From: Oculina patagonica
Taxonomy: Eukaryota
NCBI RefSeq assembly: GCF_052425735.1
Contig: NC_135758.1
Coordinates: forward strand, 47,988,001 to 48,052,000
Direction of reading: 5' to 3'
Length of the DNA stretch: 64,000 nt
The notes under the pieces are model-generated. The model was given only the letters and a program-made list of their open reading frames with translations. It ran no database searches and had not been told where the DNA came from. This document shows, one piece after another, positions 34,292 to 40,190 of the stretch (its first letter is position 1; every line of letters begins with the position of its first letter). The translations under genes and the position numbers were made by a program.

Positions 34292-37200
34292 TCATTTTAC
34301 TATTGATAAATTACATTCACCAGCCGTGTTGTCATCATGTTTTGTTAGAAGTTTCTCTTGTTTGCTGCCACTAGTTTGGCGAGTGCCCAAGAATATATTG
34401 ACTGAGGCTAGAGCATTTTTTGCCCAGTCTGGATAATTGTTATCTGGAAACATCCTTTTCATAAATCCCTGAACAAATTCAGGAAACTTGTCCTGCTTGA
34501 TGCTTTCTCTTAAATCTCTCATTAGCTGCATCTAGAATGATAATAAAACACAAATTAAAATTCTATCATGTACCGTGTCTATACTTGATTGAAGAACCGT
34601 TGACCCATGAAAAGCATATACCATGAACGATGGGACCCAAATGTTTACTGGGAAAACGAAAAAAAAAAATCGTTGTCTGTGACAGAATAAACATGATAAT
34701 AAAACAGGTTGAATAAATCAAGCCTTAAGGCTCTCAAAGAAAGAAAATATCTTGATTATCAATAAAAGGAACATTACTAAGCTTTCCAAGGCTGTCTACC
34801 CAGAATACCAGTGGGTCATATAGTCCAAAGTTTACCCCCGATATGCTTTTTACAGGGTCAACATTTCTTCAATTAGGTATAAGGTACATGCATGACTCAT
34901 GACACATTATGATTACACTGACAGGGATGTCGCTAAGGGCCGGCTGCCGGCTAATTTAACTGGCTGAAATAGAACTTTAATCCGGCTGAAATTTCACATG
35001 AAAACAAAGGCTTGGGTAAGCTTTTAGAGCTACCAAGGCCAGAAAAGCCAGCTGGGCTTGTTGATGAGCCGACTTAGTGTTTTCTTAGCTACATCCCTGC
35101 ACTGATAGAACAATCAGTCATGTCCTTGCCCTCAAGAATAACTTTCAAGTATCCCTTGTTTTCAAGAACAATTATCCCATTTTAACAAAATTGTACTGGG
35201 ATGTGATTGCAAATTGCAGGCCAGTATTTAGATGACATGACACCAGTATGAATTTCCCTCAGTTCTCTCACTTGTGTGTGAAAGCCAATAAGTCTGCAGG
35301 GCTTCTGATAATTCGCGGGAAAAAAAGTGAAATTTCACGGGATTTGAAGAGACAAATTCGCGGAGAAAACGGCCAATTTCGCGGCATTTTCGCGGAAATT
35401 TTCGGGGCAAATTTTCGTTGACAAGCAAACAAGAAAGAAAAAAAGGAAGATTCCTGACAAAAATATTAGAAGGATGTCAAATTCAGGGCAAGAAAAAAGA
35501 CACAAAAATTCATCCAACACAATTCTGAAGGCAACTGTACTTGTTTCAAGCGGTAAGAAAAACGAATAAAGCTTTACCGAAATGCTTGGCCGGTTAACCT
35601 CCTTTTTCAGCTGCAATTCAGAGCCGAAAACCGTAATGCAATAAACTTATTTTCTCCACATCGCTCTCTTGTGTTGCTTTGCAGTTTCCAAGGTAAGATT
35701 GCTCTAGATCAAAGGTTTAAATCCATCTGTGAAGTCAAAACATTCTTGTGTCTTCATTCGTGTACGATTAAACGTGTGCCTGCATTACTACAGACAGCAG
35801 TTTGCTTTCACTTCCTGTAGTGTCAACGAAAAGTCTTCTTTGCCACCAGTCCCCAGGTTTTCGCAACATCAATCTAAGAACGCCTGGTAGTTTGGTACGA
35901 TGTTTACTCGTGGCCTTGACGAAATTTCAAGATAAATTTGCACGTTTATGGCAAAGTAAACAGCTCCAACAGCCAAGATAAGTTTCAAATATGTTGAACT
36001 GACTTGTATTTGGTCGAATTTCTAGCGAATTTCGCGGTATTTCACATGTTTTTGTCAATTTCGCGGGATTTTGCGGATATACCTGAATTTCGCGGCTCCG
36101 CGACCGCGCGAAATTTCAGAAGCCCTGAGTCTGCCAGGAGTGATGAGAGCTGGCTGTAATTCAGGCCTGGTGCATGTTCATTCTGGTGTTTATGCAGCTC
36201 AAATCATCACAACAAGCAATCCCAATGAAATGTTTTTTTAGTCAGAGCAGGTAGATTCTATATTCAAACACTGAAATTACATATTAAATTATTTCATTTT
36301 TTACCGTACCCAAATTCGCAAGTGTTTGATATTGGCACAGATATTGGCACATCCAAATTCGCAAGTATTTGAAAAAATATCAAGTCACTGACCTGATATG
36401 TCACGATATCATGGACACTTTCAAGTAAAGTAATGTTACCATCCGATGAATTAAAAAAGGTTTTACCAATAAAGCAGATAGCTAGTGTTTACCGGTCGTA
36501 AAAAAGTACAAACTTTCTCGCCAAAACTAAACTTGAGTGCGCCCACCAACTGTGTGATGTTTGCCGACAAGCACTGAAACATTTAGACTGAAACAATGGA
36601 GTCAGAGTTCCCAAACTTTTCGCTAAATTCTGAATTTGGGTACGGTAAGCGGCATATCAGGCTCGTTTGGTCTTGCCATGGGCTTGTATAAGTACAATGT
36701 GATAACATTTTATGTGCTATTAAAAAAAATTACATTGTAAATTATTCAACAATTGCCTAAGTTGTGTACTTCTGTGACTCACCTGGTAATTAATATTATG
36801 AATGGTTAACAAGTGACAAGCAACTTCTTCCCTGCCCAATAAACTGTTGATGTAAGCCCTGGTGTAATGTTTACATGTCAAGCATTCACAATCTCTGTCG
36901 ATAGGTTCAAAGTCCATTGCAAATTGTTTATTTTTCAAGTGAAGTTGACCCCATGGTACCAAAGCTGTGCCAAATCTCTGCAGTTGGATTCAAATCAAGA
37001 AAGTTAAAAAAAAAAAATATCAAGAAGGTGAAAAGTGAAAAATCAAGGTAAATCTATATTTAGTATGATGCCTGCTAGAGGTGAGAATTACTTGTCTAAG
37101 GCTGGAATGAGCAGGGCTTGAAAAAGCATGAATTCCAGCTTGCTTCTTCTGACAAGCAGCTCTCAAATTTTGCTTGGAATTCGTAATTCCATGCACCTTT

Positions 37201-39871
37201 TTATAAAATTAATGGAGAGAACTTTTTGGCATGGATTTCAAACTCAGGACACAGATCATTGGTAGCATAGTTGAGAATCTACTTACTGCTGTTCTGGTTG
37301 GATAAACACAGTCAAACATATCCACTCCTAATGCACAGCATACCACAAGATCTACAGCATAGCTAGAAAATAATCAGTTAAAAAATAATAAATTATTACA
37401 CTAGTACCCCATTCCTGAAGGAGAATGAGCACCAGCTTTCAGTGCTATAATTTATAGGATTCTGTGTAACAAACCTAACTGCCTGCTAAGATTGGTTTTG
37501 GTTTTACGAGGCAACCATTTCATCATCGATCCTTATCGCGCCATTGGACGCATAAGGCCTCCTGTTTCGGTTTCTGTAGTCACATGTTGAGTCTGAGGGG
37601 GTGACTAGCCCCCTGCAGACTTGCCATAGCCCCTATTTGCCAGCTTGTTCAGGGTTCCTGTCAGGCCTTCACAGCTACTGTAGCGGCCCCGGGACCTAAG
37701 TCCCACTGTACTTCACCCTGACAGGCAGTCCCCTACTCCACCGTTGCCCACCTCCCACGAACGAGGACGTTAGGGGTTGGTCTTTGGGAGGTCGAGGCAA
37801 CCATTTACTTATCACAATTAACTCACACCAGTTCCCAAACGATCCCAGTAATCCTGGTAAAATTGTAATGTGCTCATGCTCTCTGAGGATTCTGAGGTGG
37901 CAAATTCTTCCTTAGTACCTAGCCTTTCTTTTTCTTTATTTTACACCCAATGTACAATAGCTATTGTTATGGAAAATCACACTGTATGTGTTGAAGGTTG
38001 AAGATTAACTTAACCTTTTTTAAGTTTTGGTGATCTGTTTGGTTTTATTGTTGGTGGTGTCATGCCATAAAAGATTCAAATAGCTAAAAATGATCCTTAC
38101 CCCACCCCCATGAGATATCTTGGTTTATTCTTTGGTAAAAGATCTGTGCAGAGAGTAACAGTCTTCCAAAACAAAGACTTCTCTTCTCCACCACTGAGGC
38201 CACCAATGGCAATACCAGGAGTGTCTCGTTCAACCATTTCTAGGGAGTAATAATGTGTCTTTATATCAATTGATAATATAACCTCAAAAGTTACAAACCA
38301 ATGATAATACTAAAAAAAATACTAGATAAGAGTAGATAAGGATTAAATAATGGAATAAATTGAATCGTCATTGAGTAAGTGAATAAATTGTCTGAAAAAT
38401 TTGAATTACCGGTACATGTAGGTTTTTGCTTAAAGCAGTTATAAGTTTCTAGTAAAAAGATAGATTCTAGATAATTATGCAAAAACACACCTTTCACACA
38501 TGTCTTTCTAAGTTCTGGATCTAATCCTCCCTGAATGATTGCAAAAAGATTTTGTTCTGTTGGTCTGGCATGTGCTGCAATGCATCGATCTAACCAGCGG
38601 ATCGAGCGCAACATGGCCTCTTCAACTCTAGGACCTTATTAAAAAAGTAATTAAAAAATTAATAAACTGCAAAGTAAATTAATTACCACCATTGAAAAGT
38701 AACAGTAGTGTTATGCATGTATAAACTCCCTCAATGAGAAGATACATAATTAGATGCCGTGTCACACTGTCACTGCTAAACTTGATATAAGTGAGGTTCA
38801 TGATTCCATGATGATGTGATTCTAATGCATGCACTTGCACTGTCAAAATCATAGCTGCATGAGTAATAACCAATCAGAGACACTGCACAAATCCTTTAAG
38901 TGCCACATCAGTATGAATTTTTTTCGACTTAAACTGCAGATGTTTCCCTTGCAAGAAGAAATGAGAACAAGTGTGGTTCAAGAAATGTCTGCTTAGATCA
39001 TAGTAGTTGAAAGAGTGAAAGAGAAAGATTGTATGAGAAATCAAAATAGTCACCTGTGGTAGTACTGCTGACAACATCATCCAACTGCATAATGATATCA
39101 GCCCCAATGGAATTCTGGATCTCAGTTGACTTCTCAGGAGTGAGTAACATTTCTTGACCATCGTGAGGGGACTGGAACTTAACACCTTCCTTTAAAAAAA
39201 TAAAAATAAAAAAATAAGTAAAATTAATAAACAAATACACAATAATAAAAAACAAATTTACAACACATCTTCAAAGGGTGTTTCCCCAGAGTTCATTACA
39301 AAGTGAGGGCAGTGGAAAATGCTTACCTCAGTAATCTCAGCTAATTTTAATAAAGATACCATTTGAAATCCACCACTATCCTGAACAAGAAATAATATTT
39401 ATTTTAGCCAATGTACATTTCCAACCTAAATTTAGCTGTCATAAATTTGAAGTTTTATTGTGCACATTCATAGGAACTTACAGTTAAAAGAGCTCTTTTC
39501 CAGTTCATGAACTCATGGAGTCCTCCAGCTTTTTCTAAAATTTCTGTTCCCTGCAAATATTAATAATAAAAACTCAATTGCCAAATAAACGCGAAAGACA
39601 AAGGTATTATTTAATCAAACAGTTTTTCGTAATAATTTACCGGCCTCATTCCCAGATGATATGTGTTACCAAGAATGATTTGGCAATCTAAGTCAGTGAG
39701 CTGTTTACAAGTTAATCCCTTCATGGTTCCCTGGGTCCCCACTGGCATAAATACTGGAGTTTCTACATCGTGGTGTGGTAATGTTAAAATGGCAGTTCGG
39801 GCTTTTGATGTCGAGCATTCTGCTAAAACTTTATATCTCAAAGCACAAGGTTTTACTTGCTCGTCCGCCAT
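34292..39871 (-). CDS. QTRT1: Queuine tRNA-ribosyltransferase catalytic subunit 1, ~427 aa, 9 exons
   Basis: Exons (-): 39641-39871, 39482-39550, 39327-39380, 39054-39189, 38491-38634, 38101-38239, 37287-37362, 36783-36977, 34292-34531, all phase-consistent. Motifs [68 protein letters not shown], Zn site CECLTC...HN. Confidence 0.97.
34922..35099. mobile_element. MITE with CAG...CTG termini and 6-bp TSD (CACTGA)
   Basis: CACTGA|CAGGGATGTCGCTAAG ... CTTAGCTACATCCCTG|CACTGA. Confidence 0.85.
35297..36127. mobile_element. Non-autonomous DNA transposon with CAG...CTG termini and 6-bp TSD (AGTCTG)
   Basis: AGTCTG|CAGGGCTTCTGA ... TCAGAAGCCCTG|AGTCTG; subterminal AATTTCGCGG repeats. Confidence 0.85.
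36304..36645. mobile_element. Tc1/mariner-pogo type MITE with TA TSD
   Basis: TA|CCGTACCCAAATTC ... GAATTTGGGTACGG|TA. Confidence 0.8.
37521..37792 (-). mobile_element. 272-bp non-autonomous non-LTR retroposon (RTE-like 3' end, GAT-repeat tail) with 14-bp TSD in QTRT1 intron 6
   Basis: Perfect direct repeat CGAGGCAACCATTT at 37507-37520 and 37793-37806. The minus-strand 3' end reads GAGGCCTTATGCGTCCAATGGCGCGATAAGGATCGATGATG. GC-rich body in an AT-rich intron. Confidence 0.85.
37730..37792 (-). ncRNA. HDV-like self-cleaving ribozyme fold at the 5' end of the retroposon (catalytic C position appears to be U)
   Basis: ACCUCCC AAAGACCAA CCCCUA ACG UCCUCGUU CGU GGGAGGU GG GCAACGGUGGAG UAGGGG: P1 ACCUCCC/GGGAGGU, P2 CCCCUA/UAGGGG, P3 ACG/CGU, L3 UCCUCG, P1.1 CC/GG. 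P1 starts exactly at the TSD boundary. Confidence 0.75.
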
Positions 39872-40190
39872 GTTGAATTTTACCGCTGAACAACAAAATC
39901 GTTGTCAAAAATTTAATGTTAAAAATATTACCAACTAGGGAGGAGAAGAGTTTCGGTTTGGCGAAAGAAGAAAATTTTTGTTTTAATAACTTAAATTAAG
40001 AGATAAAACATCCAATCTGACACGCAATATATTTTTTTACTATGGAAAGTGTGTTTTTAGTTAATAAAAGGTAGCTGATAGAGTTTTTCATTAGTTTATT
40101 TTTACCCTCACCCCCACGCCCTTCATTCAACCCAATCACGATGTTCGCTTTATGTTGCGGTCAGCGGATAACAGCTGCAATTCAGCCAAG
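39872..40190. promoter_or_regulatory. Bidirectional promoter region between QTRT1 and GTF3C5 (319 bp)
   Basis: Divergent start codons, both in YY1-like ANATGGCGG contexts; CCAAT boxes at ~40012 and ~40132. Confidence 0.65.

Follow-up and report, generated by a model that had tools for sequence, protein, structure and literature searches.

Ribozymes resembling that of hepatitis delta virus (HDV) have been described at the 5′ ends of several groups of retrotransposons. In RTE-type elements, the ribozyme folds into a nested double-pseudoknot core that sits precisely where the element starts; the element lacks its own promoter and is co-transcribed with its host, including from introns (PMC6765202, PMC3774820). 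A comparable arrangement was found in the genome of the coral Oculina patagonica, in a stretch of 64,000 nt (assembly GCF_052425735.1, contig NC_135758.1, positions 47,988,001 to 48,052,000), hereafter referred to as the window. An intron of the QTRT1 orthologue in this window, a gene for queuine tRNA-ribosyltransferase, carries a 272-nt element. As its most probable explanation, in which we place high confidence, we propose that a short coral RTE derivative with an internal deletion inserted here recently and has kept two cis-acting RNA modules, namely a 5′ HDV-like ribozyme and a 3′ hairpin with a GAUG-repeat tail.

The coral element resembles the RTE-type ribozymes described so far in its core, in the position of this core and in its presumed dependence on host transcription, and cleavage would likewise define its 5′ end. 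In contrast to them, its P4 is a 103-nt rod that is conserved in three families and holds look-alikes of the 3′ strand of P2, and the curated models of drz-Agam, CPEB3 and HDV gave no significant match for the coral RTE lineage (best 22 bits, RF00094). The short internally deleted elements (SIDEs) of R2 likewise retain nothing but a 5′ ribozyme and the 3′ end of an autonomous parent; they rely on this parent for their propagation and show the same low copy number and variable 5′ junctions (PMC3414825). Unlike R2, which is specific to ribosomal DNA, the coral parent is an RTE that inserts genome-wide; the site considered here is the intron of a protein gene, and mobilisation in trans has to be read from several dispersed copies with their own target-site duplications (TSDs). 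In Trypanosoma cruzi, the truncated partner NARTc shares the ribozyme-bearing 5′ end of the autonomous long interspersed nuclear element L1Tc (PMC3383444, PMC5814959), although that pair belongs to another clade and host, and the first 77 nt of L1Tc double as an internal promoter. The CPEB3 ribozyme is similarly a sense, intronic HDV-like ribozyme, so that the host pre-mRNA is subject to competition between self-cleavage and splicing (PMC10274809). However, it is an ancient, conserved, single-copy host element, whereas the coral ribozyme lies in a very recent transposon insertion that is absent from two samples. Finally, the HDV family RF00094 and the F. prausnitzii family RF02682 share with the coral ribozymes the L3 sequence UCCUCG, the GGGCAAC after P1 and a G-C-N-A-A joining segment J4/2, and one compact coral family spans RF02682; all scores were nevertheless sub-threshold, and the P4 of the element's own family is ten times longer.

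Thus, the ingredients of this locus (ribozyme-headed RTEs, mini elements made of a ribozyme plus a 3′ end, and intronic sense ribozymes) are already known. Its mildly unusual features are the long P4 conserved across three families, the P2 look-alikes within P4 and the clean presence or absence of the insertion at an intron of a housekeeping gene.

Insertion and host gene

Element positions are numbered 5′ to 3′ on the minus strand, such that position i corresponds to window coordinate 37793 − i (Table 1). The earlier note on this DNA, which was made from the sequence alone, had reported a 14-bp TSD. This was borne out by the perfect duplicate flanking the element and by empty-site contigs: in samples X2 and X9, which carry other species labels, contigs link 37508 directly to 37795. 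The joint omits 286 bases (272 + 14) and keeps a single copy of the TSD, with 12 letters compatible with either side. In sample X1, a contig with zero differences spans 37773, 20 nt inside the element, to 38300, and no empty-site joint was seen among the assembled contigs of this sample. All read evidence took the form of assembled contigs, in which RNA starts and ends are not visible. The insertion in the QTRT1 intron is a genuine event, beyond chance resemblance. Because exact empty sites occur in X2 and X9 and the site is filled in X1, the insertion is young and either lineage-specific or polymorphic.

The host gene was identified from exons of the TGT domain on the minus strand (36780–36983, 37284–37358, 38067–38240, 38486–38632, 39010–39192 and 39635–39805), which were searched singly, without a joined coding sequence. 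When two of these exons were compared with solved structures, the best matches were QTRT1 catalytic subunits (E about 1e-17); for one of the two, the accessory subunit QTRT2 was a further but much weaker match (about 3e-9). In a related coral, RNA-library contigs join 36977 to 37287 and 37362 to 38101, with CT..AC ends that correspond to GT..AG on the minus strand. The element lies in sense within the second of these introns, starting 308 nt past the 5′ splice site and ending 158 nt ahead of the 3′ splice site. Since it is in sense inside a spliced intron, it is part of the QTRT1 pre-mRNA. Both the shared strand and the intronic position had been proposed in the earlier note, and the TGT exons and splice joints confirmed them.

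The neighbouring QTRT1 intron contains a short repeat (37129–37176) of very high copy number. In each of the three DNA samples, contig depth there exceeded that of the flanks 10–40 times, and many contigs had diverging loose ends.

Origin of the element

The 529-Mb coral assembly of the same organism, which was searched for relatives, contained many of them. At several loci, query positions 3–232 and 233–272 lay 240 bp to 3 kb apart. Two 3.3-kb elements (L031 and L033, mutual identity 98.6%) matched the insert over its first 232 and last 40 nt and code for the domains Exo_endo_phos (endonuclease), RVT_1 (reverse transcriptase) and DUF6451. They end in a GAUG-type tail, not poly(A), and have TSDs. 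On the basis of size, domain order, tail type and TSDs, the parent can be assigned to the RTE-type retrotransposons without long terminal repeats. An autonomous RTE with matching ends, as anticipated in the earlier note, has therefore been found in these elements, with the reading frames interrupted in both copies examined. The GAT-tailed, RTE-type 3′ end described in that note equals the 3′ end of the 3.3-kb elements.

Judging from this alignment, the insert is an internally deleted RTE in which a short purine-rich junction links the 5′ untranslated region (UTR; positions 1–232) with the 3′ end (positions 233–272). The junction of the internal deletion falls between 37561 and 37560, and contigs diverge there as loose ends (37561/37562). 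The 3′ module forms a hairpin (−14.3 kcal/mol, z −2.1) and is presumed to be the recognition site for the RTE reverse transcriptase.

Other loci indicated that the short form has a history of its own. The purine-rich junction, with a purine run varying slightly in length, is shared by at least three close copies (L002, L004 and L010) and by the old duplicated pair L018/L019, and L002, L004, L010 and L018 have their own flanks or TSDs. The shared junction, together with the independent flanks or TSDs, implies that the short form moved as such. It constitutes a small family of about 4–6 copies found, mostly 5′-truncated, and the QTRT1-intron copy is the only close short copy with a complete 5′ end. 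An internally deleted RTE (SIDE-like) is therefore a more fitting description of the element than a short interspersed nuclear element (SINE). The SINE-like family of the earlier note stands in so far as non-autonomous short copies exist, and its description of a non-autonomous, ribozyme-headed element without a tRNA head is supported, all of the sequence being RTE-derived; the SINE label itself gives way to a SIDE-like internal deletion. As a candidate, a SINE was rejected because the whole element is RTE-derived and a small-RNA head is absent. An Rfam search of 35000–40000 found no tRNA-like or other Rfam family.

Several additional observations concern the modules of this RTE lineage. In three samples, the 40-nt 3′ module (37510–37563) had a summed contig depth approximately 5–10 times as high as the remainder of the element, which would follow if 5′ truncation affects most genomic copies or if the module also occurs in other elements. 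At four loci (L015, L016, L025 and L026; e.g., G000:C8:12152359, C13:33939768), the reverse complement of the RTE 3′ hairpin lies directly ahead of the ribozyme 5′ end, a head-to-head arrangement that could be an inverted insertion or template switching. In a further subfamily (L020, L022–L024, L027, L028 and L030; G000:C3:26.5–27.4 Mb, C1:17.9 Mb), only the first ~200 nt, that is, the ribozyme module, are RTE-like (~84% identical); conservation between the copies extends at least 200 nt further upstream, and the copies are clustered 1.8–3.3 kb apart. This suggests that the ribozyme module was captured in a larger tandem or composite repeat.

Architecture of the predicted ribozyme

As the earlier note had stated, P1 starts at the exact 5′ boundary of the element, its first base being the first base past the TSD, and P3, L3 UCCUCG, P1.1 and GGGCAAC are all present. 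P1.1 pairs C27 and C28 of L3 with G44 and G45 (37748–37749), and the GGGCAAC following P1 is as in genomic HDV. A covariance-model check with RF00094 succeeded in part: the local match covers L3, the 3′ strand of P1 and GGGCAAC and thus aligns the 5′ core, but its score is sub-threshold (22.1 bits, E 5.9, gathering score 50). Over the whole genome, RF00094 had no matches at E ≤ 10, because the genome is too large for a match of 22 bits.

The 3′ part of the ribozyme depends on which of two UAGGGG copies serves as the 3′ strand of P2. The near copy (positions 58–63, 37730–37735) and the U at 37740 (position 53) both lie within P4 as proposed here. The far copy (positions 158–163) has GCAAA ahead of it, plus a G able to pair with C50, a layout that reads as the canonical order of P4 closing pair, G, catalytic C, N, A, A and P2. 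RNAfold, unaided, pairs 17–22 with 158–163 and folds 50–152 into one rod, in which the near UAGGG lies on CCCUG at 139–143. Its helices are a base (50–53/149–152), a middle helix (58–62/139–143) and a 9-bp helix (68–76/128–136). On this reading, the ribozyme is approximately 164 nt in length, P4 is 103 nt, and the predicted catalytic C154, at 37639, is intact in the QTRT1-intron copy. The earlier note had instead seen almost no P4 and had read J4/2 as GGUGGAG; these two statements are replaced by the 103-nt rod and by GCAAA at 37636–37640.

Table 1. Coordinates of the QTRT1-intron element, its flanks and the parts of its predicted ribozyme
Feature	Window coordinates	Strand	Element positions	Basis or remark
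Host intron, QTRT1 orthologue	37363–38100	minus		Exon before it ends at 38101, exon after it begins at 37362; RNA-library contig joint
TSD copy, 5′ side of element	37793–37806			37793 (minus-strand G) is nucleotide −1 relative to the predicted cut
Whole internally deleted RTE element, 272 nt	37521–37792	minus	1–272	100% self match; ends match 3.3-kb elements
Predicted HDV-like ribozyme, ~164 nt	37629–37792	minus	1–164	Core motifs, cross-family covariation; predicted cut between 37793 and 37792
P1 5′ strand, ACCUCCC	37786–37792	minus	1–7	Pairs with positions 37–43, GGGAGGU (37750–37756)
P2 5′ strand, CCCCUA	37771–37776	minus	17–22	Pairs with positions 158–163
P3 (23–25 with 34–36) around L3 (26–33, UCCUCGUU)	37757–37770	minus	23–36	Matches the Rfam HDV consensus here
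P4, 103-nt rod	37641–37743	minus	50–152	RNAfold minimum free energy (MFE) of segment, −41 kcal/mol; compensatory changes
J4/2, G-C-A-A-A	37636–37640	minus	153–157	Precedes P2 3′ strand; C154 is 37639
P2 3′ strand, UAGGGG	37630–37635	minus	158–163	Pairs with 17–22 in MFE structure; covaries between families
Retained remainder of RTE 5′ UTR	37561–37628	minus	165–232	Full-length alignment stops at position 232
RTE 3′ module, hairpin then AUCGAUGAUG tail	37521–37560	minus	233–272	Equals last 40 nt of 3.3-kb elements
TSD copy, 3′ side of element	37507–37520			14 bp; identical to 37793–37806; CGAGGCAACCATTT on the plus strand

Comparison among ribozyme families

Within the element's own family (25 copies), covariation scores equalled those of shuffles. 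This test was uninformative because the copies vary too little, and diverged families were therefore needed. A covariance model built from the 25 copies and run genome-wide gave 92 matches, including diverged families, which were fetched and aligned. In the aligned families, 26 of 36 pairs change on both sides, and the covariation score was 0.231, compared with 0.128 ± 0.006 for shuffles (0 of 500 reached 0.231) and 0.04–0.06 for slid partners. Compensatory changes were found at all seven pairs of P1, at all four pairs of the P4 base and at the central pairs of the 9-bp P4 helix (e.g., GC 15, UA 15, AU 10), and both-side changes at four of the six P2 pairs; P3 was 90% and P1.1 89% paired. The single-stranded bases of the HDV core are fixed while the helices keep pairing through compensatory change. 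Of the helices whose covariation among copies the earlier note had made a test of its ribozyme (P1, P2 and P3), P1 and P2 thus changed on both sides across the diverged families, and P3 was largely paired.

Four families could be distinguished. Family A (~164 nt), to which the element belongs, has P1 ACCUCCC/GGGAGGU in this copy (GCCUCCC/GGGAGGU in the family master), a P4 base of CGGU/GCUG and GCAAA followed by UAGGGG. Family C (166 nt) has P1 GGCUACC/GGUAGCU, a P4 base of CAGG/CCUG and a J4/2 of GCUAA followed by the P2 3′ strand CGGGG. In family D (172 nt), the corresponding sequences are GCCUCCU/AGGAGGU for P1 and GCCAA followed by CGGGGA for J4/2 and P2, and the P4 base is not cleanly aligned. 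Family E is compact (72 nt), with P1 GUCUCCC/GGGAGAU, P4 reduced to a short hairpin (CGG-loop-CCG) and J4/2 GCUAA followed by CAGGG. Thus, in each of the four families the P2 3′ strand has G-C-N-A-A directly ahead of it, and the composition of P2 tracks between both strands across them. Family E also aligned end-to-end with RF02682 (26–30 bits, E 0.003–0.026), with GGCUAA on the J4/2 of the model. It lacks the near strand, yet keeps GCUAA and P2. When its compact covariance model was applied to the QTRT1-intron element, J4/2 and P2 were placed on a third strand (positions 65–80), because a 72-nt model cannot span an insertion of 100 nt. In the covarying 9-bp helix of P4, that third strand forms the 5′ half, and the placement was given no weight.

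The 5′ boundary coincides among families. The readable TSDs of family A, in full-length and short copies, abut position 1, and it is at this base, too, that conservation sets in after unrelated flanks in families C, D and E. The coincident boundary in four families supports the view that the structure would define the 5′ end of the element.

The loci of family E (L109–L116 and L118; e.g., G000:C2:13469896-13469967) comprise at least nine near-identical copies, each with an unrelated flank ahead of it. Their P4 has 3 bp, and the downstream 5′ UTR is like that of the RTE families.

Several points weigh against the proposed architecture. Because P1, P3 and P4 were part of the model to which the alignment (A3) had been fitted, the paired fractions are inflated and these helices favoured. 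Pair counts for P2 failed to separate the near from the far strand (78.9% vs 67.7% paired), because the two have nearly the same sequence. The Rfam matches remained below the gathering thresholds (22 bits for RF00094; 26–30 bits for RF02682 against 44, and these in the compact relatives). The fold energy of nt 1–166 was no better than that of shuffles (z +0.67), and the long-P4 fold was ahead of the short fold by only ~3.7 kcal/mol; given the non-significant z and the small margin, fold energy was set aside as evidence. In addition, the QTRT1-intron copy has A-U in place of G.U at the cleavage site and G at −1, both of which lower activity in HDV (PMC1874588).

Proposed mechanism

The mechanism that we envisage follows known systems, in which promoterless RTEs depend on host read-through and on a ribozyme-freed 5′ end (PMC6765202, PMC3774820, PMC3414825). 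Having no promoter, the element would be transcribed within a host transcript, here the QTRT1 pre-mRNA. The ribozyme would then cut directly 5′ of position 1 and so set the exact 5′ end of the element, and the 3′ hairpin and tail would recruit the RTE reverse transcriptase. The RTE proteins, supplied in trans, would use target-primed reverse transcription to place a copy of the RNA at a new site, thereby making the TSD. We infer self-cleavage, mobilisation in trans and any effect on QTRT1 from these parallels. In principle, a sense copy in an expressed intron could be a source-competent copy, and its cleavage would compete with splicing.

Alternative explanations

The alternative that survives best retains the proposed architecture but holds that this particular copy is attenuated, cuts QTRT1 transcripts little and is a poor source copy. 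Compared with full-length copies, the ribozyme has three differences, at position 1 (A for G), position 113 (distal P4) and position 132 (U.G to U-A, in P4). Consequently, the G.U wobble at the cleavage site, which is the family majority (G1.U43), is replaced by A1-U43. HDV has a specific requirement for the G1:U37 wobble, where changes lower activity; its preference at −1 is U > C > A > G, with a more than 25-fold loss for G (PMC1874588). Given A1-U43 and the G at −1, the copy may therefore cut poorly. Nine of ten young family-A copies begin with G, and the QTRT1-intron copy alone begins with A. Nevertheless, among 59 distinct sequences the cleavage-site pair is GU in 28, AU in 16 and GC in four, and the A-U cases include two family-C copies, so this pair may be tolerated. 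The HDV rules may also not transfer to coral RTE ribozymes, and the remaining core residues are identical to those of the full-length copies, the other differences lying in P4. We regard attenuation as a serious possibility, although not the favoured one. It is compatible with the preferred explanation, and the conclusion of the earlier note that this copy may be disarmed could hold in part, for another reason.

A second idea concerns timing. The look-alikes in P4 (UAGGGG at 58–63 and AGGG at 74–77) might pair first with the P2 5′ strand during transcription and thus delay or switch cleavage, with a cytosine-less inactive fold being held until the far strand and the P4 partner have been transcribed. 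If true, this would provide a built-in co-transcriptional delay or switch tuning when the host transcript is cut. We consider it unlikely.

Still less probable is the explanation that the 5′ structure is no present-day ribozyme but a protein-binding, translation-initiation or promoter element, with 5′ ends resulting from initiation at position 1. Besides the sub-threshold Rfam scores and the non-significant z-score of the MFE, its best arguments are that families A, C and D share a conserved sequence in the large P4, suggesting an extra role, and that retrotransposon HDV-like ribozymes have been proposed to aid translation (PMC6765202). However, the complete HDV core has been kept, with a 7-bp P1 at the boundary, a 3-bp P3, the UCC..G of L3, the GG of P1.1 and G-C-N-A-A ahead of P2, and compensatory changes in the helices accompany fixed single-stranded core bases. 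Furthermore, an RNA-library contig enters position 2 of another copy from unrelated upstream sequence, which speaks for read-through rather than initiation at position 1, although DNA carry-over is possible. This metatranscriptome contig (run X17, record 13; window 37564–37791) covers element positions 2–229 with two differences and has 19 nt upstream that are unlike the QTRT1 locus; it is a read-through, uncleaved 5′ junction of that other copy, subject to the same caveat of carry-over.

The short fold of the earlier note, in which a ~63-nt HDV-like ribozyme without P4 has lost its catalytic C to U at 37740 and thereby spares QTRT1 transcripts, is barely tenable, because it pairs P2 with a look-alike strand lying in P4 and the C-to-U call is an artefact of this pairing. 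The error is understandable: the near and the far UAGGGG are equally good partners for the P2 5′ strand (−8.7 kcal/mol each), the local Rfam alignment likewise picked the near one, three older copies (L025, L028 and L030) have C at position 53, and minimal HDV-like ribozymes without P4 are known (PMC3774820). However, U53 is the family-wide state and not a change particular to the QTRT1-intron copy, so that the consensus C expected at 37740 was not seen, and positions 51–64 contain no C in essentially any copy of families A, C and D. As this stretch is the same in essentially all copies, nothing has been lost in the QTRT1-intron copy. Here the comparison among families is decisive: positions 53 and 149 change together as a base pair (UG 16, GC 14, CG 10, UA 5); U 37740 is thus a paired P4 residue rather than the catalytic position, which is predicted at the intact C154, ~100 nt further on. 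The near strand itself pairs with CCCUG inside the covarying P4 rod, and compact family E dispenses with it altogether.

A genuine C-to-U change at the catalytic position was observed elsewhere, in a decayed family-D copy (L088, G000:C2:12509466-12509637) whose J4/2 reads GUCAA instead of GCCAA.

Implications

None of these findings overturns current understanding. The preferred explanation, a recent insertion of an internally deleted RTE headed by an HDV-like ribozyme, would provide a well-documented cnidarian case of the known link between such ribozymes and RTEs, and would indicate that RTEs, like R2, yield mini elements consisting of a ribozyme plus a 3′ end. The long P4 carries a practical lesson, as both short-range descriptor reading and local alignment with covariance models may latch onto the look-alikes inside it and lead to a false call of a dead site. 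As related coral samples lack the insertion, the locus could serve as a natural test of how a sense intronic ribozyme affects its host gene.

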